Assembly: GCA_965644315.1 (NCBI GenBank)
Contig: CBFFRQ010000031.1
Span: 372,001 to 436,000 of the forward strand
Reading direction: 5' to 3'
Source of the DNA: Caecitellus pseudoparvulus
Lineage: Eukaryota; Protista; Bigyra: Bicosoecida
DNA: 64,000 bases
Below are positions 2,862 to 58,500 of this stretch, piece by piece. Both the position numbers and the translations under genes were made by a program. How positions within the stretch are numbered: position 1 is the first letter of the stretch; each line of letters starts with the position of its first letter. The notes beneath the pieces are model-generated. The model was not told the DNA's origin and ran no database searches. It was given only the letters and a program-made list of their open reading frames with translations.

Positions 2862-2880
2862 GCCCCACCCCCCCTGGGCT

Positions 2881-28117: not shown

Positions 28118-28537
28118 GTGAATTAGAGGGTCCTTGCACCGCGAGCTTGAAGTTGCCCCCCCCCCCCACCGGAAACACTGGGGCAGGGGGCCACTGGTAA
28201 CTAGCCTACATTCAGCTCTCATGAAGGGCCCTTAACCTTTCCGGCATACAAAACATATACGGCTGGACCTTTATGCCACAAAATTTAAGATGAGCGCTGA
28301 CTTACGGGGATTTGCGTCCGCACGTGTTCGTAGTGGCTCCTTGAAAGCAACGTCCCAAGGGTGGATGGTGTCAGCGCAGGTGCAGTGACACAAGGCCAGC
28401 CTAGCGTGACTACACAGGCTTCCCAGAGCTTGAATTTTGCTCTGTTACATTATGAGTGAACGTTGAATTTGGTTTAGTCGAAAGTATGCCTGGAACCTCA
28501 ACAGGGCCTGCCGGAGAGGTGCAACTCCAGGTGGGCA

Positions 28538-28553
28538 GAGTTTCATGAAACTC
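28538..28553. repeat. Perfect 16-bp palindrome
   Basis: GAGTTTCATGAAACTC. Confidence 0.9.
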
Positions 28554-29264
28554 CACAGAGCTTCGGGGCTCTATCTTCGGCTTCCTCAAGCAAGCACCAA
28601 CAGGACATTGTGTGGGGGCTCGATCAGTATGCATGAAACACTACCTGCGTAGTCTGCGTGGGTGAAAGGCCCTGTGCATTGCGGAATCCGTGTCGGCGAC
28701 TTCTTGGTGCGGGCTGGCGTCTCCTGCCTTCCGCCGACCCGGATTGCCGCCCATCCTTGCGCAAGCCCTGGCGATTTGCATGCTAAGGTCAAACCCGAAG
28801 ACCTATAGCAGGTCCAGCATAGGCTGTTGCGTCTCCACAGCTTCTCCGCTGACCTCGTGGACCTCCAGCTCCACTTGGCTTCTTGCCTTAGGTCCCATTC
28901 CGGAAGTCTTGTGCGATGCTTCCTCCCTTTACCAACCCTGGGGGCCATGGCTCCTCAGCAAGAAAGTAGATGCCAAGTAGAACCACTCTGACTGTCACAG
29001 CCCTGCTGCTGTGGGCCTGCAGTGCTCCCCGGAGCTCACCCGCAGAGTAGGCAGCCCCTCCTGCTGTCAGGTCTTCCTGCGTTTTCCTCTGGAAATAATG
29101 CGGTACTCGCTCTTGCGGGTCAAAAAGGTTGACCTGGATATGAGCAACTCTGCTCGGTCTTCCCCGATGTCGCCTGTCAGATGTTGGGGACTCACTGGCT
29201 CGCACTTCGTGACCAGTTCAAGCAGCTCGCCGCCGTCCAGCTTCATGTACTCCGCTTCAATGAC

Positions 29265-36195: not shown

Positions 36196-36843
36196 TTTAG
36201 GTGTAGGGTACCCGAAACGCCTGTGTAACGCCAGGGGGGAAATGCACATAAGCCCGTATCTCACGACACCTGGAAGTCCCGAAAACAAGAACACGTTCAG
36301 AGGCAACTAGAACACTTGGAGAATACGTTGCAGTGCAGTCAGGGTGTCAATTTTGCATACGAGAGACTCTATCGGCTAATGTTGGCTACCTCGGCGTGAA
36401 AGTAGATCACAGTGTCGTCCCCCCCCACAGACACTGCAGGCGTGCATGTGGGTCCCCCAAACAATATACAAACAAACACACTTTGCTCAAGTCTTTTCTT
36501 ATGACTTGTCAGCATGCTCAGTGCTTCCTTGGGCACTGCTTCGAAGAGTGCGAGCCAAGTCGCTGCGAGCTGAAGGCTACCATTGCAGTTGGTCTTGACA
36601 AGGTGCGTGCGCGGTTTGAGTGCTTGGCGTTCTGAAGTAGGACTTCTAGTGCCAGATCATGAGATGGGCATATTTTTTCCCCTTGTTCTTGCGCGATTGG
36701 AGGCTGCGAGGGCGGTCGGAGTGTGCGGAGCGGGACTTGCGGAAGTCGTGACAGGGACCATTGGCGATACGCCTGGCGCCCAGTGTGGACCATTCACCGC
36801 TTCACTTCGCACTCCTTCCTGTGCAGATTGGACTTTTCTTCCC

Positions 36844-39800: not shown

Positions 39801-40425
39801 CTTGAGTCCGGTGCCCAGCACACTCGCCCCGCTGTCTTTTTTGTCCTTCTCAGACACGGCCTTGACCCATGTGCTGAAAGGTGCGAGCATCGAGCCGCTG
39901 GACATGGTGCCACACATCGCATGGGGCGACGCACCTGGCGCGGTGTCCTGCAGCTCAGCCCCGTCTCACCTGCAATGCTCGATGCAGTTGTTGAGCTCGA
40001 GTGAGTTCTGTGTGTGTGAGGGGGGGCTGCCAGCCTCTCCGACACCGACAGCTTCACCGGCTGCAAGCTCGTCGCCCTCGCCAAGTGTGTCACCGGCTGC
40101 ATCAACCCCTGCTGGCTCCGGCGGAGGTGGCCCAGCGTCACCTTCGCCAACGCCAGCATCTGGCCAGTCCGGTGGAAACTCTCAAGGAGCAGGGCAGGTG
40201 GCTAGCAAGCAGCCAGACAATGAGGGGGCAATCATCGGTCTCAGTGTTGTCGTTGCGGTTCTGGCAGTGGCTGTCATTGCGGTGGCAATCTCTGTCTGGG
40301 GGCGCACAAGCAACGTGACAAGTCCGAAGATGCCTGCCACGAGCGCCAGTTCAAGTGGAGCGACGGCACCTGGTGCCAGTGGGGACAAAGAGACGCATGT
40401 GACCAACCCCATGTCATCGGCCTGA
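36844..40425 (+). CDS. Single-pass LRR receptor-like surface protein
   Basis: Signal-like hydrophobic stretch (LALLLLAMSALRAHA), Cys-rich cap, about 25-30 LxxLxLxxNxL repeats, Ser/Pro stalk, TM AIIGLSVVVAVLAVAVIAVAISVW, short tail without a kinase or TIR domain. Confidence 0.9.
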   Translation: MAQSKLAQVPPAASSCASRGARSATSTRGRRGLALLLLAMSALRAHAGLPPSCTLSGSTLTSCSGCAGMEEVVISGANVTAISPTAFSTLNCTQSLTLQGLHVTTLPASVLTGMTSLVSFHVVSCPLVELPVFGSLSSLREVWLENVELTVLDWGWFDNTPHVTNVTVRGSKISHTSYASGMTSLKHLEVSDSLIRYINYVVIPSTAPLISLRLNGNLFEQLGSSALSHWGATLEFLDMSDHHLNYMSSGMFNGLSNVKTLLFRGSQVSELSDFFTPLTSLEVLDLSDNELYFSPRQGQLSTTLKHLNLSYNAMQSVYHDAFGFMSALETLDLSHNPLTSLPDTLFTHTTALSTLDLRGTHGLQLSETLLTPLASLQEVYLSGASTTLPVSAASQLTGLQALHLEYCSSIIVDSALLSLFSGLRSFTCIACRVRELGSDTFQGLNSLESITIEQSGLHTVGDGVFASLPALRRVDLSENRLSSLSAGVLADLTGVTHLDLSGNRLTSLPSSGWSSPALQYLDMSSNDMSDVPVGSWGMTALRALRASGNSVASLPADWLQGLDHLELVNVSHNPLASAGDGAFVAGGSGAGLSVDLSHTALTALPASALAGASVVRLVLRGSLVTGLDSGDLSTLAGLSLTELDMSHLSLGSWPLADCSGLSLEVLHLGSAGVTSIPAGASACFGSLREVDLSGNGLSDLPMFVGASPSLEVLSVSGNALSSLPQGLLVACGESVRVLDVSGNALPAESVLAELRSTEQLSELRASNCSWTDLSVLESILGACPTLRSLSLAENAFASWAVVGDVRLPSGLRELDMSRTRLLDMYSTFWRSPNLLEVLMLEGNPLTHVPEAALGGSRSLKRLSFASCAELDRIEMSFVDCPANLEYFAVRGTKLEDIGTRCGGGPFVYDASDLSSVASADYFLDSWTTRTLALSASMWSRVSRYYLRRSVMESAFATNATADSLSDLASAHWLTSIHFSQSPHLQYLSPVPSTLAPLSFLSFSDTALTHVLKGASIEPLDMVPHIAWGDAPGAVSCSSAPSHLQCSMQLLSSSEFCVCEGGLPASPTPTASPAASSSPSPSVSPAASTPAGSGGGGPASPSPTPASGQSGGNSQGAGQVASKQPDNEGAIIGLSVVVAVLAVAVIAVAISVWGRTSNVTSPKMPATSASSSGATAPGASGDKETHVTNPMSSA

Positions 40426-40897: not shown

Positions 40898-43800
40898 TCA
40901 CAGTGCATCTGAGGCCACGACGTAGTCTGAACAGGGTCCATCCTGCCCATCTTCCCTCATGGACGGCGTGAGACCCACACCTTCTAGATCGTCTGGGCAT
41001 GTGTCTGTGACATCAACAGCAGTGCTGTAGTAGCCCTCTTTGCCTGGTGTATCTCCTGTCGCAACGCTATGCAGGCGCGCATCAGCAAAGCCCCACATGG
41101 CGAAGGCTTGGCACTTGGCCTCGTACTGGAGTAACGCTTCACACACAACCCCTGCTCCATCGTCGTTGAGAATCACACTTTCCTTCGTGTAGTATCCAGC
41201 AGGCTTGGTGATTGTGCAGCCCCCGCCAGCTCTGTCTAGACTCTGCACGCGGCCACGTCGGGACTTGGGCAGGCACGCGCATGAGCCTGACCGCAGCAGG
41301 CCAGTGTGCAGCGGCACCTGCTGCAGGCGGTCCGAAGTCTCTGGCCCCCACAGGCCGTCCTCTGTGATGCCTTGTGCTACACCTTCACTAACTCGGTGGG
41401 AATTCACAAGGCGCGGCAAGTCTGCGTTCCACCGGCGCTGGTATGCCAGCACTGTCAGGCGCCGCACATCCTTCCAGCCTTTGGTGCCGGTCTGGCCGCC
41501 GCAAGTGGGGCCTCCTTTGTACCTGAGCACGCTCAATCCTTCTTTAATGTACTGCTGGGTTGCTGGGTGCTGGGCAAGGTACTCGCTTTCTTCAGTGCTC
41601 CAGCCGCCTGTGGGAGGCTGAATCTGGCCAGGTTCCACCAAAGTGCCTTCCAACACCCACCCACTTCGCTGCAAAGCCCGGGCGTACCCCGCATCCAACG
41701 TACTGCTCAAGACCAGCATCGTCGTCCCGAAAGCCATGGACACCCTGCCAACAGAGTGGATGCGCTCTTCCTTGGGCATACTCTTGCTGTCATCCACGGT
41801 GCCGCAGCTTTCATGGGCTGACAGCACGCTGTGCTCCAGCAGCGGCCGCCACATGTGCGTCACATTCATCAAGGTCGGGTTCCAATCTGCGTACATCTCG
41901 TCGGCGATGCTGATGGCGATGTTGCGGTCGGCATTTGACATGCTTTCCACGGTGACGTCAAGTTCCGCTGCCCGCTCGTCCAGTGCTGCTTCCTTCATTG
42001 CGTCGTGAATGAGCTGGCGATACGCGGATGTTGCATGCATGAGGGCCTGTGCAGCGGGACGCTGTAGAAATGGCGCTTCTGCTGCGCGACCTTGCAAGCC
42101 GACACCGGAGGGCGGAACCACGCGAACTAGAGCGCCTTGGTCAAGGCACAGCAGATCGTCTGTGATTTGTGCGTTGAGGCGCGACAACGCAGGCAGGTCG
42201 CAAGCTACGTGGCGCAGCTCAGAATCCTTTGGAGGCAGTCTCCAGGGCTCTGGTAGACTGCTCCACTTTCCGCTGTACAGATGCCTTACGCTTGGCTCCA
42301 CTACCATGGTGACGGGGGGCTCCACGGGAGTCGGCGCGGCATCCCCAAGTGGCTCCCACAACCCAGTAGTCTCATCGAAAGCTTCCAGCTCCCCATCTAA
42401 ATCCGGCATGACTCCACTATCAATGTTGCTCACGTCGACGGTCTTTTTCTTGCAAGGGCTGGTGGACACGCCGCAAGTCTGCACTGCTGGATGTGTGAGA
42501 GGCTGTCCGTTCTCCACGAGTTTGTGGATGCAGTCGGCACGAGCCACGGCATCGTGGATGACTTCCTGCCCAGAGCAAGGGCGAGGAAAACGCTTCTCGA
42601 ACATTTCGAGGAATCGAATGGCAGCCCGGACCAAGAACCGCTTGCAGCGCTTCTCTTTGGGTGGGTGCTGCACGGCAACGCTCGGCCAGAAGGCGCAGTT
42701 GGCGCCGATGGGGAATCCATCTGCTGGAGTCGCTGCCATCGCTTGCTGTGTCGGCCCATCCATGCGCCCGGTCACTCGCAAGACAACGGAGGGGTCCTCC
42801 ATGCCAACATTCGCATTCCACAGCAGCTGAAAGGCTTCCAGCATGGTGCTTGCCGGGAAGGGAGCGATGCCTGTAGCTGCTCCTCTGGCGTCCACGCCTG
42901 GCAAAGCCCACACGCTCCAGGACACACTCTCACCATCCACTTTACTGGGGGCGAAAGGCTGTGCATGGTTCACTTCCCACTGGTAGTCATAGTCACCCAG
43001 AGACAGGGGCATAACGTCTGCCCAAGTCGTGACACTCACCTCGGAGCCGTCCCGAAGCTTGATGGGAACGCTGGCTCCAGTCGCTGTCAAGGGGGTATCT
43101 CCAAGCACAACTGCCGAGCCGGTCTCAAACATGGACAGGCCAGGGAGCTCCACTGCCGTGTTGGCATTCCCTGCCCCGCCGTTGCTCTGCCAGGTGTGCA
43201 AGAAGTGCTGCGTGATGGGGGTGCGCAGGCCTGCCGCAATGGTAAGTTGGGCGCTGGACCCAACGGCAGCCCGTGTCAGCTCCACCTTTCGCCGTAGTGC
43301 TTGCAGCACTGCACGTTGAGCGTATGGAATGACTTTGGCCTCTGAGGTCAGGCGGACCAAGCCAAGGTTGACGAGCAACTGCATCGAGTGGAAGGGGCCG
43401 CCTTCTGTGCACATTAACATGGACAAGATCTGCAGACTGACTTGCCCACCGCATGTGGCAGGGTTGCGGGCGCACAAGTCCACCATTTGAGGGGGAAGCG
43501 GGTCCCGGCTAAAGCCACCGCTGACGCTCGGCACTGGCGCGAGCGGCTGCGGTGTAGTTGTGTCATCCTCGACTTGGACTGAGCGGGCAGCTGCCGAGCG
43601 CTTGAGTAGGTCCTGCAGCCCAGTTCCCCATGCCCTTGTCTCGGCAAACTGTAGGAAGGCGCTGGTGTTACCATTCGGCGGCGGGGCATTGCCAGGAGGA
43701 GGAGTGTATCCGTACAGCGAGGTCGCGCCAACGCGCCCTGCGAGCACATCCGCATGTAAGATGGGGGCCACTACCCGCCCCTGCGTGTCAATGGTCACTC

Positions 43801-46800
43801 CCAACTTTGCAGGGGAAAGCGGCTGAGGCCCTGTAGCGGACTCTGCTGCGGCTTCTCTGCACCGCTTGATGAGCGCCATCGCGTTCGCAAATCGGGTCCG
43901 AGCTTTCTCCTCCATCGCCAGCTCCAAGAGCACGGGCGGCTCGTCGATCAGAAGTTCGCCGAGAACCGGCGAAGTTACACCCGAACTCAGGACTTCTCCT
44001 GGAACCACGGGTGTAATAAGCTCGGCTGACCCAGGAGGCAGTTTGTACCAGGGGATCGGTGGTAAGGTGATGCTGACTTTGTACGGGGACAGGCGAGTGA
44101 ATACTGGCACATGCGGGACTCCACCCACAGTGGAGCCTGCGTCAGCTTCAGACTTGGAGGTGCGCACAGTTTCGGGGTGTGGACACTGTCCAGTTGACTT
44201 CATAACACCACCTTCATCGTCATATGCAGCGGAGACTTGTGGCTTGAAGACACGAGACTCTTTTTTGTTTCCACACTCGTTTGCCAGGGTCTGCCCGTCA
44301 CTCTGGATCCGACGTACGCGAATCGCTCGCCGTTCATCGTACCAGAAGGCTGGGCGGCAGAAAGTTTGCGATGCTTCGCGTTCAATTTGCTCAACCTCAG
44401 AGGATCCTGCTAGAGAACGACGGCTGGAACTGAGAGAGGCCCCGGCAGCCTCGCGGTCTGCGTACGCAAGCGAAGCTGGGTCCAGGGGGGGTCCACTGCT
44501 GAGAGCCCCAGCCGACGAATCGGTGTGTACCGTCCAGAAAGCCTGAGCTGGCGGCCCAAACATGGCGAGGGTCGGGTCGAATTCAGAAGGAAGGCTTGCA
44601 AAGTTCGCTAGGGGATGGCCAGAATCCACGACCTCGCCTACGGGCGTCCAGAAAAGGATGCACTCAGCGTGGCGCCGCTGGACCAGCGCAGATGATACCG
44701 AAATCTCAGCGGCTGTGCTCGCTGGAGTCGAGCCAGCAACGCTGACAGTCGTAGTAGAGATGCTGGCGCTTGGAAGACCAGTGTATGCACTGGCTTCACG
44801 TCGGATAAAGGAGCAGACTTCGTCGTATCGCCCTTGGACAAGAGCAGAGCGAAGACCAGACACACGGCGCTCAGCTAGCACACTGCAGTCCGTCGAGAGC
44901 ACAAATGAAACCAATGCGGAGAACTGGTTTGCGTTCAGCACCACCCCTCGAGGAAGGTGGTTGCGCACGCAGCGCTCGGCATCTTGCACGTCAGCAAGCA
45001 AGAACGCCCGCGCCCTGTCCATGGAGATGGGCGAAGTTCCCAGGATAGAAGCAGCTTCGGCCACTGTGCTTGCGCCTTCCACAATGTGCCCGTACCCAAC
45101 AGACACCAGACCAGGCTCATCGTATGCGCCATGGTATGGTGCCAAGCGCCCTTGCAAAGTGGATCCACCGGCGTCTGCTCCCTCAAAGTGCTCAATCAAG
45201 GCCATGCCTTCAGGGCTGGTGGATAGCAAGCTCAAACTTGATGTTGCGGCGTGGCCGCCAGGCGAGCACAAGCCACCTCGACCTCCACAATGATCTGCCG
45301 TGGCAAGTGTTTTCAGGGGGCGGGTAACCCCACCACCATGCGACAGGAAGGGGTCTTGCCCATGGGGAGTGTATGTTGGCCCGCGAGCGCACTGGGTCCC
45401 AGTGGAACAAGCGCGGGTCTCAACCAGCGCAGGGCAGGGGCCGCCTACTGCACTTGTGCTGCTTGAACCAGGTGGTGCAGCAGTCACTGACCGTGACCGC
45501 GTGCTGATCCCTGTCCCACAGCTCACACTGCATGCAGACCAGTCTGACCAGCCCCCCACAATGCACGTGGACAGGGATCGCGCCAGGGAGCGTGCGTGGG
45601 GCGACATACCGCCTCGAGGGGGGGAGGGGTGCAGCTTCTCTGCCTCTCTCATGGCTACCACAGCATTCGCAGTGTGGATGCCTATGGCGGGCCCCATGCT
45701 GAAAATTTCCGCGTCACTCTCAAGGCGTAAGACGCGGCTGGGCCGTTCTTCAAGAATAGCGACGATCTCCGACTCAGCTGCTCCTGCTCCTTGCTCGGTG
45801 ACAATGAGGTGTGCTCCATCCTCATGCTGGAAGAGCGCTGTAGCTGGCCCTTCCAACTGCAGCAGACGCCGCGAGGTGCACTTTGCGTTCGTGAATGCAG
45901 GGTCAACGTGGCCATTTGGCAGGCCGGGGTAGGTCCACCAAGAGTTCGTGTCAGTTCGGGGATCAACCGTAGGCACTGCGCCCGTAAAGCCCCTGAACGC
46001 CTTGGACGGGTCAAACGTTGCCGAAGGCAGCGATGGCTGGTAAAAGCTGCGTAGTGGTGGGTCTTCTCCAGGAGGTGTCCAGAACAGAACGCACTCCATG
46101 TGTCGGCGTTGCACGGCGTCCTCATCCCAGCACCCTGGCGACGCGGGGCTTCCTTGAATGAAGGTACGCAAGCGCGGGCAAAACCCAGACCAATTGTCAC
46201 TGCTTATGCCAGCGTTGGCAGAGTCGGCAGCTGTCCATGCAGCAGGGCCGACATCGTATGCGAAGGCAACAAGGGCAGAGAACTGATTCACAGTCAAGGG
46301 CACACCTTCCCACTTCTCTGCTACCTGGCTCGCCAGCATCTCTACCGCCGCTCTCAGTCCCGCTTCGGCCTCTGCTTGGCTCCATGAACAAAAGGATGCG
46401 GCGCCTCCGCCCAAGCATTTAGAAACCTCTGTTTGCGCAGCAACCACGGATGGAAACTCACGCACAGGGCTGCTATACCCGTTTGTGATTAGCCAAGGCC
46501 GTGCTGTTCGATGAGAGCCTGCGGAGGAGGTGTAGGCCCAAGACTGGCGGATGAGCTCCATGGCGGCGGGCACAACGGTAGTTGTCGTGTGATCCACGGA
46601 CGCTTGGCCGTCCGAGACAGGGAACGGGCCGCACGCAAATCCGCGACCGCCACACCAATCGGCAAAAGCTGATGTCGGGCTGAATCGAACTGCTCCTCCA
46701 GAGCCATGGATGAGAGTGTTGGCAGGCCATGAGGCAGGGATACTTGTGGGTGGCGAGGAGCCAGGCAAGAATGGCCCGCCCACGTACGTCACACCGCCGT

Positions 46801-49800
46801 CAGCTCCGCGAATATCTTCTGCACTGCCTTGCGCGCCATTCAACGGCTTGTCGTCGGCATAAAGGTTGTTCGTCGCAGAGAGGAAGGTCCCCATGTCCTC
46901 CACTGCTGCCACATACAGCAAAGGAACAACGACAGTGTCCCAGACTGGCGCGCTAGACACCTCCTTCGCCCAGGCCATGAGCAGGTCTCTCGGGATGCCA
47001 CCTGCAGCTGCGATGGCCCTGCGCTGCTCCGACGGGGTGGAAGCCAGGAACGCCTGCAGTCCTGCTGGCAGCTCAGCAACCTGCTTGGGCGTAAGGACTT
47101 TGAGGCGCTCTCGCGCTTGCTCTAGAGTGCTGCCAACGGGTTCCTCCCATTCAGACTTGCCCTCGCCTTCTTGCGGGAAATCAGGTGGGCGCGTGATGCT
47201 GTGGAAAGCGGCAGCGTTCAAGGTGGTGTTGGGGAGGAACAAGTCGATGTTCAGCGTATGCCCTGTGTACTCGTTCCCCACATAGTTCCAGTCGCCGACC
47301 TCCTTTATCGGATCTGACGGGGAGCCAAGCAGCACATCGATGCCTTGCAGAGTGGGATGAGGTCGCGTGCGGAGCCATTCAAAGTTCTTCACAGAGTTTT
47401 CGTTCAGGTACTTTGCCGCGTGTGTGTAGTTTGAGGCCAAGCCCCGGACCAAGGCCGCGCGCATGAATGGGTTGCTCACGACGTCCTCAGCGAACGTGTC
47501 ACATGACGACTCAAAGGTGATGGTGACACCCCCACGCTGCAGGGCTGCTGCAGAGGGCAGCACCTGCCCGCTTTGGGCGACCAGTTCTGATGTGACCCTC
47601 ATCGGCCATGTTGTCAATGGAGTGACAGACACCTTGTGCATGCCGCCTTCGGGGGAGACCTCCTCAATGGTGGCAGTGTACGTCGCAGAGAACTCCTTCA
47701 CATCTACAGGCACGTCTTTAATGTCGCCGTAAGCTAGGCGATTTTCCGGGCTGCTCGGCTTCAAGGCTTGGCCTTCCCACAGAAGGGCGGTGTCGGCGCC
47801 CGTTTTGGCTGAGTGAACACGCGCGGATATGATCTCCTCAGACACGCCTAAGTTTGGGTCAGGGTTGCCACCCACTTTGGAAATCCCATCCACTAGTGGA
47901 CCAGATACAGGGAATAGAGACTGGAGTGCCGACGTGGGAACTTGGAACGAATCTGCGTCGGGGTCAGAGACCTTGAATGCAGCCGCGCCAGCTCTGTATG
48001 TGCGCTGCAGCTCCATCCAGTACACACTTAGCTTGTCAATGGGTTGGCGCCCAGCGATTGCAGTCAAGTTGCTGTTTCCACTAGTCTGAGCCGAGGCTTG
48101 TGTGCCAGGGGTGATTTGGTCCCCCCCTGCGACTCGCAGCGCATCCGGAAGCACGGGGTTTGTGTCGTCAGCACCAGCAGGCACGACAGTGATTGTGGAT
48201 GGTGCCCTTCCGCTGACAGAATCCAGACTGTTCGCAGGGTCATCTTCCATGGTGGGTAGGGGGAACAATTGTGTGCTCGCACGAGTGCTAATGCGCAGCA
48301 TGATGTTTGGGTCGCCAGCGTACAGACCTCGCACTGGTTTCGTCTTGATGCACACTCCTCGTGACCAAGTTGGCAGTCGCCCAGAGTAGAAGGCATACGA
48401 TTGGGAGGGCAGGTACGTGCGAGCACAGTGAGAGTCTCCGATGGCCTGCAGCGTTGCCCACTGTAAGGTCATATCAGCCACAAACAGCGACCGATCCTCC
48501 ACCCGGGTCCTTGGGACCTCAGAACTGCTGAAGCCTGCGGGAGGGACGCCGGAACCATCGTCACCGGCAGGATTGCCGCCAACTCCACCATCAACTGAGC
48601 CAGGGGATGTCGGGGGCGCATCTTCTGCTGCTTTGCTCGCCCCTTCTGCGCTCAATGCGTGGAGGGACAGAAATGCCATCGTGGGGGCCAAGGTCCTGCC
48701 TTCATGCTGCGTGCGAATGTCGCGCTTGGACTGACTCAAGATGCAAGATTGCACAGCTGAGCCATCGTCAGTAGATTCCTCGACAACCTTAGCCGCTGTG
48801 GGGGGAACTTTGGCTGGTTTGCAAGCCGAAGTAGCGTCATTTGCCAGGGTTTCTACCGGCAGGTACTTGCTGCGCAGGAAAGCAATGTCCGCACTGTCTG
48901 TCTTGGTGGAGAACTCGGACGGCAACCGCCACAAGGGGGTGTATGCGTATGACGCAAACAAGCGTGGGTGAACTTCAGCTGCAGCCATGGCTCCAGCATA
49001 GGGCTTGCCAGCTGTTGCACTAGAAGGGGCTGTTGGGATGTAGGCAGCTGCGATGCCACCGGCCGTGATCACACGTGGAGAGAGCGGAGCGTCGAAGAAC
49101 AGGGCGCTGTCCAAGGGCATGGAGAAGCGCTGCAGTACACCAGGCTTGACAGAAGCGATGGGGTAGACAGTTATGGTGGAATATGTCATCCACCTGCCAA
49201 CAGCCTCTACCTCGAGGAAGATGAAGCGCAAGCGCTGTGCTTCCCCTGGCTCGCCATCCTCTACAGGCTCTGTGGCCGCGCTGGTGTCAGAGAGGCCTCG
49301 CACCGTGCCGTTGCCCGCAGCATGCTTCGGATCCGAGGACAGGTCAGAGGTATAGAACTCGACGAAGTGTCCTTCTCGCCCCAGGCCACGCCCCACGTGG
49401 GGCGCGAAGCTTTCCTCCACAGCAGCTTTAATTTCGCTAGAGACCGATACTGTCAGCTCAGCATGCTTACGTAGCTTCCCGTCAAGGACTCTGACGCGTG
49501 TCTGGGCTGATGACGCCTTGGCCTTGTTTACAGTCTTGCCGTCCAAGCGCTGCTTGCACAGCTCAGCCCAGACATCGCTATCGATGACTTCGGATGACCC
49601 CGTTAACCCTGAGCGAGCACCACGGAAATCAACCACGAGCTGACCAGTGTCTTTACCCCCACCTTGATACTTAGGATCACTCCAAGTTCCAGATGGTGTG
49701 AACTGCACCGGTCTCAGGCCCAGGGCATCCACAAGAAGCTCTTGGGCAAGCCACAAGTCATCGCTGGGCGGCGAGGAGCTGGACAGCTGTGGCTTGGTGT

Positions 49801-52800
49801 CACATACACCAATTGGCAAGTGTGATGCATGGACAACAATGCGCTTGGCATCCACTGGGATGGGCACTGCGAAATAGCGTCTGCGCCCTCGAACGGCAGT
49901 AACTCGCTGGGGCCGCCCAGCGTGCATGGGCAGCACCTCGCTCACTGTGACGGAGCCCTGGAAGTCCTCGCCCACCTTGCTTTTTCGAGAAGGGTCTGGG
50001 AGGAGATAGGCACCAAAGTACCCGTCGAAGTTTACGTCGCGGCATCTTTGAGCCCATGGAGTGGGCACGCCCGCAGGTGATGCCTCCCCATCCACAGTGG
50101 CTTCGTCAAGGCACGGCACCCAAATGCGATCCGAGCCTGACATGGTGATTTGGGCAGTGTGCTTGCGACCTGGGACAGGCACAGTGTGGGGCTCATTCCA
50201 ACGCATGCTCTGCTTCTTCTTCTTGCCAGACACAAAGGAGTCCATGTTTGCCACGGCTGAGTTGAAGGCAGTGGTCAGGGGTGTGTTGGAGTAGTACACG
50301 TCCAGGTCTCCCTTCACCTCAGAAGTGGTCACAAAGAGCCCGATGGCTCGGTCAGAAATCACTGGCTGCAACAATGCGTGAGTCTTGCTGTTGTCCATGC
50401 AGCGCTGCTTTGCAGTGACCGTGATGGGCTTGTTCAGGAGCATGCCTCGCACCAGGTTCATGCCCACCGCGGCTTGGCACAACTCAACATTGGGCGTGAT
50501 GAAAGTCAAGAGGTTCCACTTGCCACCACCCGGTGCATGGAAACTGTGCCCTTCCACGCATACAGTCATCGCAGACACTGACCCGCTTTCGGCAGCTTTC
50601 ACGACATCGTTGACGCCGGATACGTGCACGAGCCGCCGGGAGGCAGCCTCAGAGTTCCAAGATTCTGGAGCAAGATCAAGGTGAGAGGCCCACATAGACG
50701 AGTTGAGATTGTGTGTAATGGTGTCATCGAAAGGCTCCAGGGAGAGGTGCAGGTTTACTTTCCCGATCACCTTCTTCGTGCTAGAAGACTGGTCCCACAC
50801 CGTTGTGTGCGACGTGACGTAGAAGTGCAGGGTGTCGTCCGGGATATCCAACTTGTACAGTGTTCTTCCACCAGCAGCGTGGTCGTCAAGGGTGCCCGCC
50901 AAAGAACTGCCAATGGCAGTCTTGATTGTTGAGCCAGCTCCGATGGGCATGGTGGCAACGTGCACTAACCCTGGCTCCAACTTGCGCAGTGGAGAAAACA
51001 GGGTGCTAAGCACCGCGTAAGTGGATCGATGGTTGAGTCGCCCTGCGTCGGTGAGCGTTTTTACTCGTGTAACCATTGCCGTTTTTGAGCTCTGCTGCCA
51101 GTACTCGCAGGTGCTGTCCTGCCCTTTGTGCCCCTCAGCGCTGGGTCCAGTCTTTGAGCACGACAGAGGCACAGTGCGAATGAAGGAATGGTAGAGGTCC
51201 TTTCCGAAGTAGCGCAGGGTGTTGGCGATCCACAGCTCGTGTCGCATGACGCCGCACCGATCGTACACTGGGAGCCGCGCGTACTTCTTTGGCGAAGGGA
51301 CTGCGTCGATGAACTCGTTTCCGTCTTCTTCGCGCCAGTTCTCGTCAGTTGCAGCGAATGGACCACTCTTATGCCACTCTTCCTGTGCAGAGGCCCGCTG
51401 TGACAGATCAGTTTGGAACACAACTTGCCCATCGTTGTTCTTATTCGCCCACTGTGGGTCGGTCCAGTAGGTGAACTGCAAGCTGGAATCGTATGCAGCT
51501 GGCACGTTGTTGAAAGACTCCAGTCGATGCGTGACAACCCCTAGTTCGTTCTTGAGGGGCGGGTGCAACCAGCCGCTTGAGCCGGGTACCGGGATGGGAC
51601 CCAGGCATTTCCATGCGACGGTTCGAGGGTACATCAGCCACCACGCCTTGTTGTATGATAGCTTATCACCTATGCCAGTGGACTTAAGCTTCTTCTGTAT
51701 CCACTCGTTCTTCTTGATGAAGGACACAAGTTTGGTGATGTCGCCATCGCCTCCCCCGCCGCCACTCTTGGCCTTGGTTTCCTGTTTAACTTTCACTTTG
51801 GCCAGTCCTGGGTTGTCTCGCTTCCAGTTCTTGTAGTCTCCACGCACCTCGTCAACCATGGCGCAATCTTCTTCAGAGCCTCGGCAGCTTGACGACTGCA
51901 AATTGCGCTTCACACGAGTCAGGAGACCGTCGTGCTTGGCAACATCAAGCGCCGCATGAACGGCTGCCAGGTGCCGGGCAGAAGAGAACGGGTCTTGCAG
52001 CGCATGTTGGCTTGGGGCGCGAAGCTCGACCAAGGTCTGCCCCAGAGCGCGACCATGAGCTGTTATTACGGCGTTCGATGCGTTCAGGACGATTGGAGCG
52101 TGCTGGTTCACCGCGTAGTCGCGTTGGTGGCGGACGTGCTCAAGTCGCAGGCGGTGAAGCGTGCGGGCGGAAGAAACAGAGCCGACCAATTCCACAGCTA
52201 CAAGGTTGTCCCCATCATGGAGCAGATGCAAGCCCGCATCTCCTTTGCCTGCCAACTCGTGCACAAGGGTATTGAACCCAGGGACCTTGCTCAGGGTCTC
52301 ATCGAGCTGATCATCTCCAGCCTCTACAACACGAACGGCCGCTTGGGGGTCAGGCATGCGGCTCCCCAACACGGTTCCATATGCAGCCTTCAGGGTCTCA
52401 GCAGTGCGTTGTGTTTGGCTTTGGGGTACTGAACCCGCATGCACTGAGTATACAGCAGCTTGAGTGTGCTCGTGCCCGGCACGGGCTCCAAAGTACGAAG
52501 AGACATCCCTCGCCAGAATAGGCTCACGGCCACCCTTGGCAATATCACGGAGCTGGCGGTGCAGTGCTGCATGACGAAGGCTATCTGCTGAAATGAAACG
52601 GTGCGAAATCTTGCGCCTCGTGGCTTTGGGGGCTTCCCACGGGAGCATTTCACCAGGCACGGCATCCACCTCCACTCCATCTGCGTCGAGGATGCGAACG
52701 TTCTCGCGCTCGAGAGGAACGCTTGACGGAGTAGGTGTCTCGTCAGACAGACGCCTAGCGGCAACTTTGCGCCACAGCGCCCCATGTCCAGGGGCATGAT

Positions 52801-54973
52801 GCGGGGCTGCACTTCGGCCTCGCTCATGGAGCAAGCCGGGTTGAGCAAGCTCCAATCCCAAAGGGCCAGGAAGCACGCCTCGCAGAGAGCCGGGCGGGAG
52901 GGTGTCTGCCCACGCCTCTACTTTGGCGAATGGTGTCGATGTGGAGCTTGAAAGGTTGCTACCCCACGCAGTCTCGTTGTCTGCCAGGCTCGTGTGGGCA
53001 AGGAGGCGCTTTCGTTGGTTGGATAGCACGAGGCCGTCATAGCCGACGGGGTGGGAGTACACAGACACGCTGGGCGGCTCATCGCCCAGGTAGTTGCTGG
53101 CTGTCATCGGGGAGAACTCTTTGTCAAACAGCTCAAGCATCTTCTCTCGCATAGCCTTGAGAGGGTCCTCATCTACTATGTCCACCCGCACATCCAACGC
53201 AATCTGGAAGGACAAGTCAGCAGTCAGCAGCAGCTCCAGGGGGTCCTTGTGCCGCAGCAACGTTGGCCGGCTGCACTTGTTGGTGGGGTCTGGCAGTGTG
53301 CCCGTGACGAGGAACTGGCCACACATCATGACAGTGATGGGGACCACGAAGTACACTCGCATTTCGCCGTAGAAGCACACCTCAGGCTTCATCCACAGCG
53401 TGACACGCATGTCGTCTGCGATCACTTGCTCCTTTTTTCCGACTGGCTGGTCCACATCAAATGTCAGGGCACCTGCCCACGGCTTCTCGCCATCAATATA
53501 GCGGAACCCAGCCTCATGGCGCTTGGCATTCTGATAGGTCCGGGTGGCAAAAAAGCCGTTGATGCGCAGACCCAGCTCCATGCCCACGCGCATGCCGAAC
53601 GCCGCGTTTACGTGGACAGGCACCTTGCCCACCATGACCCACTTGCCCCCTTCCCCGAACAGCAAGCGGTGGAAAAGGTTCCAGTCTTTGCGCCACCGTT
53701 TGGGATGTTCCCATAGATCCAGCTTGAAGCGGATGCTGTAGCCGTATTCGAAGTGAGCCATGAACGACAATTCCATGAGCTGTGGGCAAAGCTTCACCAC
53801 ATCCACCTTGTGGCACTTGGTCGCCTTCACGTTCAGCTTGAAGTCATAGCCAGAGAAGGCATATGCGTAGCAGTTCTCACACTTAATGGCGCCCATGATG
53901 GCTTTGGCAGCACTGCATGCTTTGCCATCGTCTCCTTCGTCCCAACAGGCGCCAACCTTCCACCCGAGTTTCTTCAAGGCATCATTGACTTTTCCTTGGT
54001 TTTCCTTCACATGCGTGCTCAAGGCTGCCGCCATGTCATTGAGAGTAACTTCATCTTCCAAGATTTCCTTCTTGTCAAAGTCCCAGTTCCACCCAATTCG
54101 AGCAAATCCGTAGGGGTCCTTGATCTCGACCTTGCATCGGTCATCGACAATGTAGGAGTCCAACGAGCAGTCGATGTTGCGCTCTTGGGTGCTCTCCAGC
54201 AGGCGTGCATGCACCAAGTCTGGACCAGCCTCACTACTCCAAGCCTTGACGTCCTCTGCGTCCGCATCCCACAGCTGCCGCCGGTGCTGTGGCAGCGGGT
54301 GCTCCACGCCCATGGCCTCCTTGGCTGGGCTGATGCCTGGGAAAGCTGGGATGGCATTCGGGGAGGCCCTGAAAGCAGCTTCGTCTGGTGTCTTGGTGTC
54401 TTTTTCAGCTGCAGCCCGAAGGCCTCGTGCCATGGCTTCTGGAGCAGATGATCCATGGTGCAGAGCGTGTCCGGTCCGGTGCTTGATGGACACTTCCGCA
54501 GAATGGAACATCTCCCACAGCTGCAAGTCTTCAGTCTCCACGAGGAGTGTGGAGAATGCAGGTGCGGTGGTTATGCGCGTCACAGCCTTCACGCGGCGGT
54601 AGATGGGCGTGGGCTCTGAAGCAGTGGGGTCGGTGTGGCAGCGCCAGACAGCAGAGCCAGACAGGATGGGGTTGCCAGCCGTGACGGTGAGATGGTGCTG
54701 CAACGCCGCATCGGCACCATCCTCAGTGGCCACGCGAAGCAAGAGGAAATCCTCCTCACACTCAACGTCCAGAAGGTGAGTGAGCTCGTCCATGTTCACC
54801 ATGCCAGCATGGTGCTGCACGGAGTACTTGATGTCATGCAAGCTGCCTCCTTGCCGTGTGCGCGAAAGCCCCGTGGCGTGGCTGGGGACAGAGGGGATCT
54901 GGAACGCTGAGATCCTTCGTATGGCTTGCCACACGATAACTAAGGCAAGCGTTGCAGTAAAGTGCCTTGCCAT
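40898..54973 (-). CDS. Giant (4,691 aa) secreted multidomain protein: 2x GH24 lysozyme-like, TSP1, 2x M15-peptidase-like/peptidoglycan-binding modules
   Basis: Uninterrupted ORF with N-terminal signal peptide and no C-terminal TM. GH24-like at ~46073-46587 and ~44642-45223; TSP1 (WSDWSACSVSCGTG..RSR) at 45407-45565; M15/PG-binding-like at ~42695-43453 and ~41300-42205. Confidence 0.85.
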   Translation of the reverse strand: MARHFTATLALVIVWQAIRRISAFQIPSVPSHATGLSRTRQGGSLHDIKYSVQHHAGMVNMDELTHLLDVECEEDFLLLRVATEDGADAALQHHLTVTAGNPILSGSAVWRCHTDPTASEPTPIYRRVKAVTRITTAPAFSTLLVETEDLQLWEMFHSAEVSIKHRTGHALHHGSSAPEAMARGLRAAAEKDTKTPDEAAFRASPNAIPAFPGISPAKEAMGVEHPLPQHRRQLWDADAEDVKAWSSEAGPDLVHARLLESTQERNIDCSLDSYIVDDRCKVEIKDPYGFARIGWNWDFDKKEILEDEVTLNDMAAALSTHVKENQGKVNDALKKLGWKVGACWDEGDDGKACSAAKAIMGAIKCENCYAYAFSGYDFKLNVKATKCHKVDVVKLCPQLMELSFMAHFEYGYSIRFKLDLWEHPKRWRKDWNLFHRLLFGEGGKWVMVGKVPVHVNAAFGMRVGMELGLRINGFFATRTYQNAKRHEAGFRYIDGEKPWAGALTFDVDQPVGKKEQVIADDMRVTLWMKPEVCFYGEMRVYFVVPITVMMCGQFLVTGTLPDPTNKCSRPTLLRHKDPLELLLTADLSFQIALDVRVDIVDEDPLKAMREKMLELFDKEFSPMTASNYLGDEPPSVSVYSHPVGYDGLVLSNQRKRLLAHTSLADNETAWGSNLSSSTSTPFAKVEAWADTLPPGSLRGVLPGPLGLELAQPGLLHERGRSAAPHHAPGHGALWRKVAARRLSDETPTPSSVPLERENVRILDADGVEVDAVPGEMLPWEAPKATRRKISHRFISADSLRHAALHRQLRDIAKGGREPILARDVSSYFGARAGHEHTQAAVYSVHAGSVPQSQTQRTAETLKAAYGTVLGSRMPDPQAAVRVVEAGDDQLDETLSKVPGFNTLVHELAGKGDAGLHLLHDGDNLVAVELVGSVSSARTLHRLRLEHVRHQRDYAVNQHAPIVLNASNAVITAHGRALGQTLVELRAPSQHALQDPFSSARHLAAVHAALDVAKHDGLLTRVKRNLQSSSCRGSEEDCAMVDEVRGDYKNWKRDNPGLAKVKVKQETKAKSGGGGGDGDITKLVSFIKKNEWIQKKLKSTGIGDKLSYNKAWWLMYPRTVAWKCLGPIPVPGSSGWLHPPLKNELGVVTHRLESFNNVPAAYDSSLQFTYWTDPQWANKNNDGQVVFQTDLSQRASAQEEWHKSGPFAATDENWREEDGNEFIDAVPSPKKYARLPVYDRCGVMRHELWIANTLRYFGKDLYHSFIRTVPLSCSKTGPSAEGHKGQDSTCEYWQQSSKTAMVTRVKTLTDAGRLNHRSTYAVLSTLFSPLRKLEPGLVHVATMPIGAGSTIKTAIGSSLAGTLDDHAAGGRTLYKLDIPDDTLHFYVTSHTTVWDQSSSTKKVIGKVNLHLSLEPFDDTITHNLNSSMWASHLDLAPESWNSEAASRRLVHVSGVNDVVKAAESGSVSAMTVCVEGHSFHAPGGGKWNLLTFITPNVELCQAAVGMNLVRGMLLNKPITVTAKQRCMDNSKTHALLQPVISDRAIGLFVTTSEVKGDLDVYYSNTPLTTAFNSAVANMDSFVSGKKKKQSMRWNEPHTVPVPGRKHTAQITMSGSDRIWVPCLDEATVDGEASPAGVPTPWAQRCRDVNFDGYFGAYLLPDPSRKSKVGEDFQGSVTVSEVLPMHAGRPQRVTAVRGRRRYFAVPIPVDAKRIVVHASHLPIGVCDTKPQLSSSSPPSDDLWLAQELLVDALGLRPVQFTPSGTWSDPKYQGGGKDTGQLVVDFRGARSGLTGSSEVIDSDVWAELCKQRLDGKTVNKAKASSAQTRVRVLDGKLRKHAELTVSVSSEIKAAVEESFAPHVGRGLGREGHFVEFYTSDLSSDPKHAAGNGTVRGLSDTSAATEPVEDGEPGEAQRLRFIFLEVEAVGRWMTYSTITVYPIASVKPGVLQRFSMPLDSALFFDAPLSPRVITAGGIAAAYIPTAPSSATAGKPYAGAMAAAEVHPRLFASYAYTPLWRLPSEFSTKTDSADIAFLRSKYLPVETLANDATSACKPAKVPPTAAKVVEESTDDGSAVQSCILSQSKRDIRTQHEGRTLAPTMAFLSLHALSAEGASKAAEDAPPTSPGSVDGGVGGNPAGDDGSGVPPAGFSSSEVPRTRVEDRSLFVADMTLQWATLQAIGDSHCARTYLPSQSYAFYSGRLPTWSRGVCIKTKPVRGLYAGDPNIMLRISTRASTQLFPLPTMEDDPANSLDSVSGRAPSTITVVPAGADDTNPVLPDALRVAGGDQITPGTQASAQTSGNSNLTAIAGRQPIDKLSVYWMELQRTYRAGAAAFKVSDPDADSFQVPTSALQSLFPVSGPLVDGISKVGGNPDPNLGVSEEIISARVHSAKTGADTALLWEGQALKPSSPENRLAYGDIKDVPVDVKEFSATYTATIEEVSPEGGMHKVSVTPLTTWPMRVTSELVAQSGQVLPSAAALQRGGVTITFESSCDTFAEDVVSNPFMRAALVRGLASNYTHAAKYLNENSVKNFEWLRTRPHPTLQGIDVLLGSPSDPIKEVGDWNYVGNEYTGHTLNIDLFLPNTTLNAAAFHSITRPPDFPQEGEGKSEWEEPVGSTLEQARERLKVLTPKQVAELPAGLQAFLASTPSEQRRAIAAAGGIPRDLLMAWAKEVSSAPVWDTVVVPLLYVAAVEDMGTFLSATNNLYADDKPLNGAQGSAEDIRGADGGVTYVGGPFLPGSSPPTSIPASWPANTLIHGSGGAVRFSPTSAFADWCGGRGFACGPFPVSDGQASVDHTTTTVVPAAMELIRQSWAYTSSAGSHRTARPWLITNGYSSPVREFPSVVAAQTEVSKCLGGGAASFCSWSQAEAEAGLRAAVEMLASQVAEKWEGVPLTVNQFSALVAFAYDVGPAAWTAADSANAGISSDNWSGFCPRLRTFIQGSPASPGCWDEDAVQRRHMECVLFWTPPGEDPPLRSFYQPSLPSATFDPSKAFRGFTGAVPTVDPRTDTNSWWTYPGLPNGHVDPAFTNAKCTSRRLLQLEGPATALFQHEDGAHLIVTEQGAGAAESEIVAILEERPSRVLRLESDAEIFSMGPAIGIHTANAVVAMREAEKLHPSPPRGGMSPHARSLARSLSTCIVGGWSDWSACSVSCGTGISTRSRSVTAAPPGSSSTSAVGGPCPALVETRACSTGTQCARGPTYTPHGQDPFLSHGGGVTRPLKTLATADHCGGRGGLCSPGGHAATSSLSLLSTSPEGMALIEHFEGADAGGSTLQGRLAPYHGAYDEPGLVSVGYGHIVEGASTVAEAASILGTSPISMDRARAFLLADVQDAERCVRNHLPRGVVLNANQFSALVSFVLSTDCSVLAERRVSGLRSALVQGRYDEVCSFIRREASAYTGLPSASISTTTVSVAGSTPASTAAEISVSSALVQRRHAECILFWTPVGEVVDSGHPLANFASLPSEFDPTLAMFGPPAQAFWTVHTDSSAGALSSGPPLDPASLAYADREAAGASLSSSRRSLAGSSEVEQIEREASQTFCRPAFWYDERRAIRVRRIQSDGQTLANECGNKKESRVFKPQVSAAYDDEGGVMKSTGQCPHPETVRTSKSEADAGSTVGGVPHVPVFTRLSPYKVSITLPPIPWYKLPPGSAELITPVVPGEVLSSGVTSPVLGELLIDEPPVLLELAMEEKARTRFANAMALIKRCREAAAESATGPQPLSPAKLGVTIDTQGRVVAPILHADVLAGRVGATSLYGYTPPPGNAPPPNGNTSAFLQFAETRAWGTGLQDLLKRSAAARSVQVEDDTTTPQPLAPVPSVSGGFSRDPLPPQMVDLCARNPATCGGQVSLQILSMLMCTEGGPFHSMQLLVNLGLVRLTSEAKVIPYAQRAVLQALRRKVELTRAAVGSSAQLTIAAGLRTPITQHFLHTWQSNGGAGNANTAVELPGLSMFETGSAVVLGDTPLTATGASVPIKLRDGSEVSVTTWADVMPLSLGDYDYQWEVNHAQPFAPSKVDGESVSWSVWALPGVDARGAATGIAPFPASTMLEAFQLLWNANVGMEDPSVVLRVTGRMDGPTQQAMAATPADGFPIGANCAFWPSVAVQHPPKEKRCKRFLVRAAIRFLEMFEKRFPRPCSGQEVIHDAVARADCIHKLVENGQPLTHPAVQTCGVSTSPCKKKTVDVSNIDSGVMPDLDGELEAFDETTGLWEPLGDAAPTPVEPPVTMVVEPSVRHLYSGKWSSLPEPWRLPPKDSELRHVACDLPALSRLNAQITDDLLCLDQGALVRVVPPSGVGLQGRAAEAPFLQRPAAQALMHATSAYRQLIHDAMKEAALDERAAELDVTVESMSNADRNIAISIADEMYADWNPTLMNVTHMWRPLLEHSVLSAHESCGTVDDSKSMPKEERIHSVGRVSMAFGTTMLVLSSTLDAGYARALQRSGWVLEGTLVEPGQIQPPTGGWSTEESEYLAQHPATQQYIKEGLSVLRYKGGPTCGGQTGTKGWKDVRRLTVLAYQRRWNADLPRLVNSHRVSEGVAQGITEDGLWGPETSDRLQQVPLHTGLLRSGSCACLPKSRRGRVQSLDRAGGGCTITKPAGYYTKESVILNDDGAGVVCEALLQYEAKCQAFAMWGFADARLHSVATGDTPGKEGYYSTAVDVTDTCPDDLEGVGLTPSMREDGQDGPCSDYVVASDAL

Positions 54974-55540: not shown

Positions 55541-58500
55541 TCAGTTCTGGGAGCGCAAGTTTGAGCGGTCAGGCACCGCCAAGTGCGTACCCCGTCTCAG
55601 AGGGAAACTCCTCGTGTTGACTCGCCGCTCTGTGCTCGAGATAATGTGCCCGCCGCGAATGCGCCCTCGCTCTATGTCCGTGGGATGCCCTCTTGCGAGT
55701 CCTTTGTGCTTCCGTCCACCTGGAGATGGCTGTTGACCAATAGATGGCATGAGAGACATGCGTGCTGTTGAGTGCTTCGCACCCGGCGTGCCTGACACCT
55801 GAAGGAAAGACTTTGAGGGCAAAATACTCTTCCTACTGCCGCTTTTCCGGTCGCTTTGCGCACTGTTCTTAAAGTTGATCGGGTTCACTTGCCGATAGTC
55901 GAGCTCTTCGACATACTGGGAGCTAGTGTGCAAGCGTGAGGACTCGTATCCTTGCCGGTGCGAATCGCCGATGGCTGCGACGTTAGGCCCTTGGAGCGAA
56001 GCATGGGCGAGTGATTGTCGGCGTCGAGCAGCAATAGCAGCGGCAGCGAGACTTGTAGATAGCATGGGATTCATGCCAGTCACGATGCTGCCTCTTCCGG
56101 AAGAGCGTCGGGTGTTCCCATGGAGAGCGTGGCCTGGCACTCCTGGTCGAGGGCGCTCGGACTTTGTCGCGGTCCGTGCAGAGCGAAGCTCTCTTGAAGC
56201 TGTCAAGCGCGCAACTGCCAACGCATCTCGCTTTTGAAAGACTGAAGAACGTGTCGGCTTGACTGCGGCAACGAACTGACTTTGTAGAGCAATACCAGAC
56301 TGGCGGAAGGTGCGCCTTCGCTGAGTTTTCCTCGGGACTTCAACCGAGCTCATGGGCATCGGAGCAGCTGACTCCCGCTTTGCTTCCTTCATTCGTAACG
56401 GATTGAGGCCGTCCACGGGTACGCTTCGGCGACGGGCTGCTGCCAGAGATCGTTTTTGACCGGCTTTTAGACGGCGTCGGAAGACCACAACAGCTGAAAC
56501 GATCACGAGTGCCATGCACACGGCGATGACTGGGCCGAGCCACACCCAAATGCTGAAGACTGGCACAGGCTCCTCCTCACTTGTTTTTCCGAGACGATGG
56601 GACTCGTACCCCACAACCACCGCTGAAGAGGTGGATGCACCAGCATCATCCACAACCACCGCTTCGAGAATGTACACACCTGGCTGACTGAGAGAAGCCA
56701 CTGTCCCAGCAGAGGCCGACACGGGGACTGGATCTGCGGCTGGGCCAGCAAGGAACAGCGTCTGCGACGCCGAAGCGCCCCCCAGCACCTCTTCCGAGCA
56801 GTCTCGAACGTCCTCAGCGGCGTCCAACCAGTGCAGTTGCGAGGTGCCTTCTGGCAGAGCTGCTAGTGAAAAGCCAAGCTCACTGTGCTGGCGGGCGAGA
56901 GTCATTGACGCCTTCTCAGCGACAAAGGTAACATTGCCGAAGTCACGAGTCACAGCACAGCGCCAGAAAGTGCGCGTCACGTTGCCATCAGCATCGGCAG
57001 TTCCTGCCAGCTGCACCATGACACCTTCTGGGGACTGCGCCAGGAGGGAAGCCACGGGCACGCTCGCGGCAGTGGCTGGTCCCCGCAGATCCACACTGCC
57101 CGCGGCGGTACTGTGTGTCGCAGCATTCACAGCCAGAACAGGCGGAATGGTCACTCTGAATGCCAGCTCAGCCGTGGCCACTGCTCCTTGAGCATCTTCC
57201 ACCTCAACTGCCACGCGATGCGCGCCTGGGAGCAGCGATCCAAGGGTGAGAGTCGCGCCGTTCCGGCTCATGGCTGCTGTGGCTTGCACAGGTACCTGCT
57301 CAAGGGCCGAAGCCGCGCTAGTTTGACCAGAGGCAGCGCTAACCACGGCTGGGTCGCTGCTAGCCCATGCAGATGGAGCTGCGAGGTTTGCTGACCGCGC
57401 TGATGTCGCAGGGGCGATGCTGCCGTACAGCGCCAGGACTGAATCAGCGAAGCCTGTGCTGAACGCGCGCCCATTTGGAGGCGAGTTGGCAGCCACGGAG
57501 GATCCATCCACCCTGTGGCTGGGATCAAACGCCCCGCCTTCCACATAAAACCACGAGAAGCCGAGTGCATCTGAGGAATCTCCATCTGAGCTCCCTGATG
57601 CATCCAGCGTTACTTCAGCTGCAACCTGCCCAGGAGGCACGAGGAACAGAGTCTGGTTGGAGAAGAGGGCAGCGCTGGGACGCTCCTGCAGCATGGGGGC
57701 GAACTCTGTCAAGTGGCAGATGTTCACTGTGTAGTACTTGGCGACCACGTCCAGGTGCCAGTAGTAGTCGTCACCTGTGCAGGTGTCGGCGGCATTCATC
57801 CACCTGCCTTCTGCTACAGAGTAGAAGAAGAGCGTAGGCGCAGCAGCCGCGGGGTCAATGCTGCCACCAGCAGACCCCACGCCGTAGAACAGGGAGATTT
57901 GAATGGGTTCTTGGAAGACGAAGGAATCCAGGGGAGCGCCATCTTCATCCAAGGCCTTGATGGCAAAGGAGTAGCCGTTCCACTTGAAGTTGTTTGCTGG
58001 GGGCTTGTCGTCTGGGTTGTGTAGGCCGTTGACCTTGAGCGGGTCAGTGCTGCTTCCCCCTGCTCCAACATCATCGGGGCCAAAGCTGGACGCCATGAAG
58101 CGTGTGGACGAATTCACAGACCCAGGTGGAATGTACACTGAGCCAAACGTGGCGTCGTCGTCGAAGTCCGAAGGCTTGGCTCCGACTGCTGGCCCTGAAG
58201 TGGAAGTGCCGTTGCCCACCAAGCCTTCATCTGTGACATTCCCCAGCTTGACGGTATCAAACGCCATGACAGTGCCACTGGTAGGTGTGACAGACGTGTC
58301 CCCACGCCCCACACGGACACCTGAAGAGACCATGAAGAGGGACTTGAGCCCAACAGGGTTGATTGCTCGCACTGCAACGTAGTACACTGTGCTGGCCTGG
58401 AGCTCTGCCCCCAGCAGCGTGAGGACAGGCGCCTTAACTCCGATAAGGTACCCGCCTGTCGCGTCACATGAGATGGCAGTCCTGGACACGTTGACCCATC

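Follow-up and report, generated by a model that had tools for sequence, protein, structure and literature searches.

Phage endolysins, bacterial autolysins and cellulosome-like scaffolds combine glycosidase, peptidase and binding domains for use on an insoluble substrate, and among the lysozymes the catalytic set of GH24 consists of Glu, Asp/Cys and Thr, with the pattern E11/D20/T26 in T4 lysozyme. For small flagellates, which are major grazers of aquatic bacteria, knowledge of wall recognition and breakage comes largely from inventories of small lysozymes. In the predatory stramenopile MAST-4, GH24 ranks among the glycosidase families with the highest expression (PMC8237690), and the wall-binding domain of a fungal GH24 enzyme triples its lysis, with an OD drop of 0.50 vs 0.17 (PMC10394673). 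M15 enzymes carry the zinc/catalytic motifs SxHxxGxAxD and ExxH, with a further zinc-binding His downstream (PMC3610138). Each of the modules treated here is already known, as are eukaryotic GH24 enzymes and small M15-lysozyme fusions. A giant GH24/M15 architecture was not found in the literature searched, the coverage of which was incomplete, and a eukaryotic family of 4,700-6,000-aa proteins with up to three lysozyme and up to five M15 domains, whose paralogues differ in their live sites, has apparently not been described.

The window, i.e. the whole stretch of 64,000 nucleotides that was analysed, contains on its reverse strand an ORF at 40898-54973 which encodes 4,691 aa without intron or stop codon (~502 kDa without the signal peptide). 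The gene lies on contig C31; a copy on contig C57, a paralogue on contig C29 and a relative on a metagenome contig, L027, were used for comparison. A signal peptide is predicted by eye for aa 1-23 (54905-54973, reverse strand, as for all features of the protein), where the hydrophobic N-terminus is divergent between C31 and C57 and the mature sequence that follows is nearly identical. A hydropathy scan for helices showed no transmembrane segment in the window protein, and its end does not resemble a GPI tail.

For the ~2,700 N-terminal residues, more than half of the protein, no family match was obtained with Pfam or NCBIfam. An N1 domain (54479-54841, aa ~45-165) is probably beta-rich, has no family match and resembles by eye the first exon of C29. 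The Cys-containing N2 domain (53114-54106, aa ~290-620) is weakly alignable to C29; a homologue search with N2 returned none and its match in the Atlas serves as a lead only. The middle scaffold (46694-50626, aa 1450-2760) is colinear with C29 and comprises several probable small beta-sandwich domains. Within it a possible third PG_binding_1-like subdomain (49550-49762, aa ~1738-1808), which the earlier note does not mention, is likewise a lead only, with a weak likeness consisting of PF01471 at E 0.14 in the C29 equivalent and a profile-profile match at E 0.0026 and 12% probability. Two beta-strand blocks conserved in C29, at aa ~2435-2520 and at 43949-44266 (aa ~3570-3675), lie on either side of the lysozyme cassette and might be one domain that the cassette has split; an AlphaFold model of aa 2470-3669, built from a 3-row alignment only, reached a pLDDT of 29, too low for use. 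The protein ends in a Cys-rich tail (40901-41272, aa 4568-4691), which is partly conserved in C29.

The lysozyme cassette contains two GH24 domains, for which Pfam PF00959 matched at aa ~2863-2940 (E 5.5e-8, 33.6 bits) and aa 3283-3390 (E 1.2e-11, 45.5 bits), both above the curated cut-off of 22.3 bits; NCBIfam returned GH24-type models alone for the window protein, far below cut-off. The two domains align with each other at 32% over 276 columns (E 1e-15), and each is preceded by a short Cys motif and followed by a conserved Cys/Trp motif. In GH24a (46049-46666, dN/dS 0.065) the lysozyme fold is present and the catalytic residues are gone, with Trp2812 at the Glu position and Ala2824 at the Asp position. 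The site is degenerate in C31, C57, C29 and L027 alike, and judged by these residues GH24a is a pseudoenzyme which fails as an active GH24. GH24b (44633-45301) is a predicted active muramidase with Glu3264, Asp3285 and Ser3291, a set kept in all four family members. Its activity is to be read as a prediction because 12 residues are inserted between Glu and Asp and Ser replaces Thr. The best solved match of GH24b is a fungal GH24 (PDB 8B2S, E 5e-7; E 4e-10 with the family profile). Between the two lysozyme domains lies a TSP1 repeat (45389-45565, aa 3137-3195, E 1.4e-10), in which PF00090 and PF19028 exceed their cut-offs (31.4 and 41.7 bits) and the WxxW and CSVSCG motifs and six Cys are found.

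The C-terminal part contains two M15 modules, each with a PG-binding-like subdomain: M15a, which is VanY-type (42695-43462, aa ~3838-4093), and M15b (41273-42211, aa ~4255-4567). Other tests than Pfam were needed for them, because both remained below its cut-offs (VanY at E 0.11 for the first, no match for the second). With a profile derived from 145 modules of the database, M15a scored 37+28 bits and M15b 21+18 bits, M15b having been absent from the query by which the 145 modules were recovered. An AlphaFold model, made for M15b alone (pLDDT 83), is not fully independent of this result, since the family alignment steered it. The best solved matches of the model were VanXY (Z 8.6), LdcB (Z 7.9), Hedgehog (Z 7.1) and VanX, and it aligned with a VanY+PG_binding_1 cluster of the Atlas over the whole length (residues 2-315) at a TM of 0.54. 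Foldseek with the M15b model gave no match at E<=0.001, with LdcB top-ranked; a homologue search with M15b found none, and a sequence search of the PDB with the C-terminal 892 aa yielded no match. On the strength of the profile matches, with the second module unseen by the query, and of the M15b model matches, the assignment of both C-terminal modules to the M15/LAS fold holds. The PG-binding label of the subdomains after M15 is likely and weaker than the M15 label: PF01471 (PG_binding_1) gave no Pfam match on the window pieces and matches 6 of 140 family modules. The earlier note had read two GH24 domains flanking a TSP1 repeat, followed by two C-terminal M15 plus PG-binding modules, and this anatomy was confirmed, with the reservation just given for the PG-binding label.

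A profile search with the first M15 module retrieved 387 proteins, in which a VanY-type domain is followed by a small helical subdomain; PF02557 was present in 135 of the 140 modules that were aligned. The members with a named source belong to Myxococcales, Polyangiaceae, the amoeba Clydonella and the sponge Oscarella, and many others resemble myxobacterial lipoproteins by their ends, the labels being noisy. In one member, P0002 from Oscarella pearsei (2,253 aa), the M15 module occurs twice in degenerate form, together with trypsin, PLAT and Hedgehog signalling domains. The subfamily profile matched Ply500 and LdcB at E 1e-9 to 1e-7. In a tree of 140 M15 modules, M15a grouped with M15a of C29 and L027 and M15b with M15b of C29 and L027; no donor was supported, and a direction of transfer is accordingly not proposed. 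By its sequence relatives the M15 module is assigned to a VanY-type subfamily of myxobacteria, amoeba and sponge and not to a phage type; the view that the modules demonstrably derive from phages was rejected, given this subfamily and the lack of a donor in the tree.

The module family keeps the His and Asp zinc ligands at 98-99%. In M15a of the window protein they are replaced by Phe3949 and Val3956 while Arg3917 is kept; these ligands are lost in C31 and C57 and intact in C29 and L027, and in the tree the M15a branch of C31 and C57 is long (1.01 vs 0.39 and 0.17). M15b has Met4413 and Leu4420 at the two positions, with Arg4376 kept, and none of the four family members has an intact M15b. The invariant Arg is retained in every dead M15 copy. 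Both modules of the window protein are thus predicted pseudopeptidases, which leaves GH24b as the sole probably catalytic fold among its four enzyme folds.

The C57 copy is full length and 83% identical to the window protein. The dN/dS between C31 and C57 is 0.11 overall and 0.06-0.16 in each region that allowed its calculation, and over the C-terminal half dS approaches saturation; the modules without catalysis lie at 0.07-0.12 and the live module at 0.06. The uninterrupted 14-kb ORF of the earlier note is therefore a real gene under purifying selection, which acts on live and dead modules alike.

The C29 paralogue (G000:C29:48302-66226, reverse strand) has a main exon of 5,967 aa that is colinear with the window protein in N2, the middle scaffold, GH24a, GH24b, M15a and M15b, and an upstream exon with a clear signal peptide (by eye) and an N1-like part; the exons were read separately and not joined into a spliced model. 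TSP1 is missing from it. Beyond the shared modules it contains a third GH24, three peptidases of M15C type and an extended tract of Cys-rich repeats. Three GH24 domains and M15/VanY/M15_4 domains (PF02557 and PF13539 among them) exceed the Pfam cut-offs. Two of the three GH24 domains have intact motifs, as do four of the five M15-fold domains, with SxHxxGxAxD and the third His ligand, and one domain matches the Ply500 L-Ala-D-Glu peptidase at E 4e-21. The metagenome contig L027 (Ga0307982_1000180, 95-14635) carries an orthologue of C29 with 52% identity over 4,846 aa and an identical module order; in its first M15C domain the ligands are lost, which C29 keeps. Because of the intact motifs of C29 and this orthologue, the genes are read as a conserved family of which the window copy is a partly disarmed branch. 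The window gene descends from a C29-type gene, and of the two the C29 paralogue is by its motifs the more plausible as a genuine multi-enzyme lysis machine.

Several claims of the earlier note have to be narrowed accordingly. The proposal of four peptidoglycan-directed modules is strengthened as to their role by the intact motifs of C29 and L027; four active enzymes were rejected for the window protein, in which the catalytic residues of GH24a, M15a and M15b are replaced. With three of its four enzyme folds lacking catalytic residues, it does not read as a lysis machine with four activities. The description of the modules as of bacterial or phage type is too simple, because the M15 kin are myxobacterial and eukaryotic, GH24 has its best solved match in a fungal enzyme and the tree supported no donor. 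The eukaryotic setting of the supposed extracellular scaffold stood. TSP1, which occurs in C31 and C57, is not that scaffold and is an add-on, because it is absent from C29-type genes, and TSP1 as scaffold was rejected.

C31 and C57 have a block of at least 50 kb in common (window 40905-54915 and 56460-64000; G000:C31:412905-462561 vs C57:310233-360000), with 95-96% identity over the upstream genes and 72-88% over most of the giant gene. The block ends at the stop codon, the downstream flanks of the two contigs being unrelated, and it represents either a segmental duplication that has undergone conversion or a haplotype that has diverged strongly. Upstream, an ORF from window 55541-64000 (reverse strand) to G000:C31:456538 encodes 9,665 aa; the protein begins with a sequence like a signal peptide, carries repeated extracellular domains rich in beta structure and has a single transmembrane helix at its C-terminal end. 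Together with another long ORF still further upstream, these genes form a group that codes for giant extracellular proteins. A single-pass leucine-rich-repeat protein encoded at 36583-40425 (forward strand) lies tail to tail with the giant gene. An 8.3-kb repeat at ~28150-36420, present in at least seven nearly complete copies (93-97%), contains an ORF at 30786-35642 (reverse strand, 1,618 aa) which by eye combines a degenerate helicase, a Mutator-type transposase and a SWIM finger. Terminal inverted repeats of this element were not found; close to one of its ends, at 28069-28117, there is a perfect hairpin of 21 nt.

The host organism, tentatively a bicosoecid-like heterotrophic flagellate, is inferred to be a bacteria-eater. 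On balance, the window protein is somewhat probably a secretory-pathway precursor that acts on the peptidoglycan of prey by multi-site binding and glycan cutting, most likely in the food vacuole. The signal peptide would take it into the ER, and the chain may be cut at Arg-x-Leu sites in its linkers. The groove of dead GH24a would bind glycan strands, the dead M15 domains would bind stem peptides via the retained Arg, and the PG-binding-like subdomains would add avidity. Together these binders could hold the single live muramidase GH24b on the insoluble wall, like the binding domain of the fungal GH24, while the C29 paralogue would supply both cuts, in the glycan and in the stem peptide. After the duplication the C31/C57 branch would have lost M15a catalysis and the extra enzymes and gained TSP1. 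Support for the reading as a wall-digesting precursor comes from the conserved residues of GH24b, the constraint on the dead modules, the retained M15 Arg, the intact hydrolases of C29 and its metagenome orthologue, and further from the fusions of this M15 module to other wall-acting domains, the gain in lysis through the binding domain of the fungal GH24 and the strong expression of GH24 in MAST-4. Against it, GH24b has its insertion and the exchange of Thr for Ser, most of the chain matches no family, purifying selection shows that the dead folds matter and not that they bind peptidoglycan, and the M15 fold has been put to other uses elsewhere, as in Hedgehog. Moreover, simple digestion needs no 500-kDa protein, since two small tandem GH24 genes with a canonical Glu-x8-Asp-x5-Thr triad are present at C40:330156-331781 (forward strand).

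Other readings of the same data were weighed. An artefact or contamination, by which the frame would be a chance ORF, a misassembly or part of a bacterial contig, could draw on the protein collection, where no full-length homologue of the window protein was found in a search spanning 0.55-1.75x its length; this reading is almost certainly wrong, given three family members with open frames in the genome, the dN/dS of 0.11, the independent metagenome orthologue, the TSP1 domain in the protein and the location of the C29 signal peptide in a separate upstream exon. The contig that bears the window measures 856 kb, in a genome of 30.6 Mb with a eukaryotic SSU rRNA of 1,697 nt, and its genes read as eukaryotic (DEAD-box helicase, kinesin, EFHC-type flagellar protein, ABC transporter). 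Contamination of the ORF was rejected, as it is already largely refuted by the family, the orthologue and the eukaryotic context. It is unlikely, though to be taken seriously, that the protein serves in the capture or recognition of prey, at the surface or discharged, with non-catalytic binders and TSP1 tethering or sorting bacteria before uptake and lysis being secondary. The dead yet conserved state of three of the four enzyme folds, the gain of TSP1 in the C31/C57 branch only and the co-duplicated single-pass extracellular neighbour of 9,665 aa would suit such a role, whereas the lack of a membrane anchor and the conserved catalytic residues of GH24b speak against it. In Gram-negative bacteria, moreover, the peptidoglycan is covered by the outer membrane and would be hidden from such a protein.

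A repurposed extracellular structural or signalling protein, in which the dead folds would be spacers or protein-interaction modules and the recognition of peptidoglycan would be lost, is quite improbable. The co-option of the M15 fold in Hedgehog, the sponge protein that joins degenerate copies of the same module to Hedgehog, trypsin and PLAT domains and the long branch of M15a are consistent with it; the retained catalytic residues of GH24b, the retained M15 Arg and a paralogue full of intact wall hydrolases are not. The linkers raise yet another possibility, namely a polyprotein from which cuts at Arg-x-Leu would free small proteins, so that lysozyme, binders and propeptides are co-delivered and no single machine exists. 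Such sites lie in linkers at aa 231, 654, 740, 1022, 1446, 3035, 3128 and 3518, C31, C57 and C29 each have a site after GH24a and L027 has one like it there, and the window protein has 37 RxL motifs vs 23 expected, a modest enrichment. In diatom proteins, propeptides are cleaved at RXL (PMC5647440). However, the enrichment is weak in C29, dibasic-plus-Leu motifs are enriched in intracellular controls too (21 vs 13), the sharper pattern was picked after the data were seen, and the module order is strictly kept. Cutting would also be compatible with an assembled complex. The polyprotein reading is considered very unlikely, and the wall-acting precursor is retained as the preferred reading.

A broader proposal, which is offered tentatively and may well prove wrong, is that some bacterivorous flagellates possess single-chain, cellulosome-like peptidoglycan machines of 500-620 kDa for digesting or catching prey, in which the C29 type with six active sites would cut glycan and stem peptide and the window gene would be a pattern-recognition or prey-selection device made of dead lysozyme and M15 folds. 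The family supplies named, testable modules for the recognition and breakage of walls, places stem-peptide peptidases beside lysozymes on one eukaryotic chain and brings to view an uncharacterised M15 subfamily common to myxobacteria and eukaryotes. Additionally, C29 vs C31/C57 forms a natural live/dead pair for studying how hydrolases become peptidoglycan binders.

Compared with known systems, the direct source family of M15a and M15b is the module family represented by P0001 (Clydonella), P0002 (Oscarella), P0014 (Myxococcales) and P0016. Its members are mostly of 250-1,000 aa with one intact module, which elsewhere is fused to GH24, GH19, GH25 or PG_binding_1; in P0016 (803 aa) the same M15 module is joined to GH24 behind a signal peptide. 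Two lysozymes or TSP1 occurred in none of 76 mostly longer family matches scanned, and none of the 150 best of the 387 family matches exceeded 2,253 aa. The window M15 modules have their fold in common with VanY/VanXY, LdcB (M15B) and Ply500/LysB4 (M15C), and C29 has intact M15C-like domains; VanY has Glu-x-x-His where the window M15 subfamily has Asp-x-x-His, and both window domains are without the His and Asp ligands. The GH24 lysozyme of MAST-4, a predatory flagellate, is highly expressed in the ocean and is not described as a giant multidomain protein (PMC8237690). The fungal TsCWBD-GH24 (PDB 8B2S; PMC10394673) is similar in being a eukaryotic GH24 whose non-catalytic wall-binding part boosts lysis, but it consists of 245 aa with one catalytic domain and an SH3-like binder, whereas no SH3-like domain was found in the 4,691 aa of the window protein, where the dead folds are the candidate binders. 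Neither was a cohesin/dockerin system detected in it. With endolysins, autolysins and cellulosome-like scaffolds the window protein shares the assembly of wall-enzyme folds and candidate binders in a single chain, and it differs from them in being eukaryotic, several times larger and furnished with conserved pseudoenzymes.
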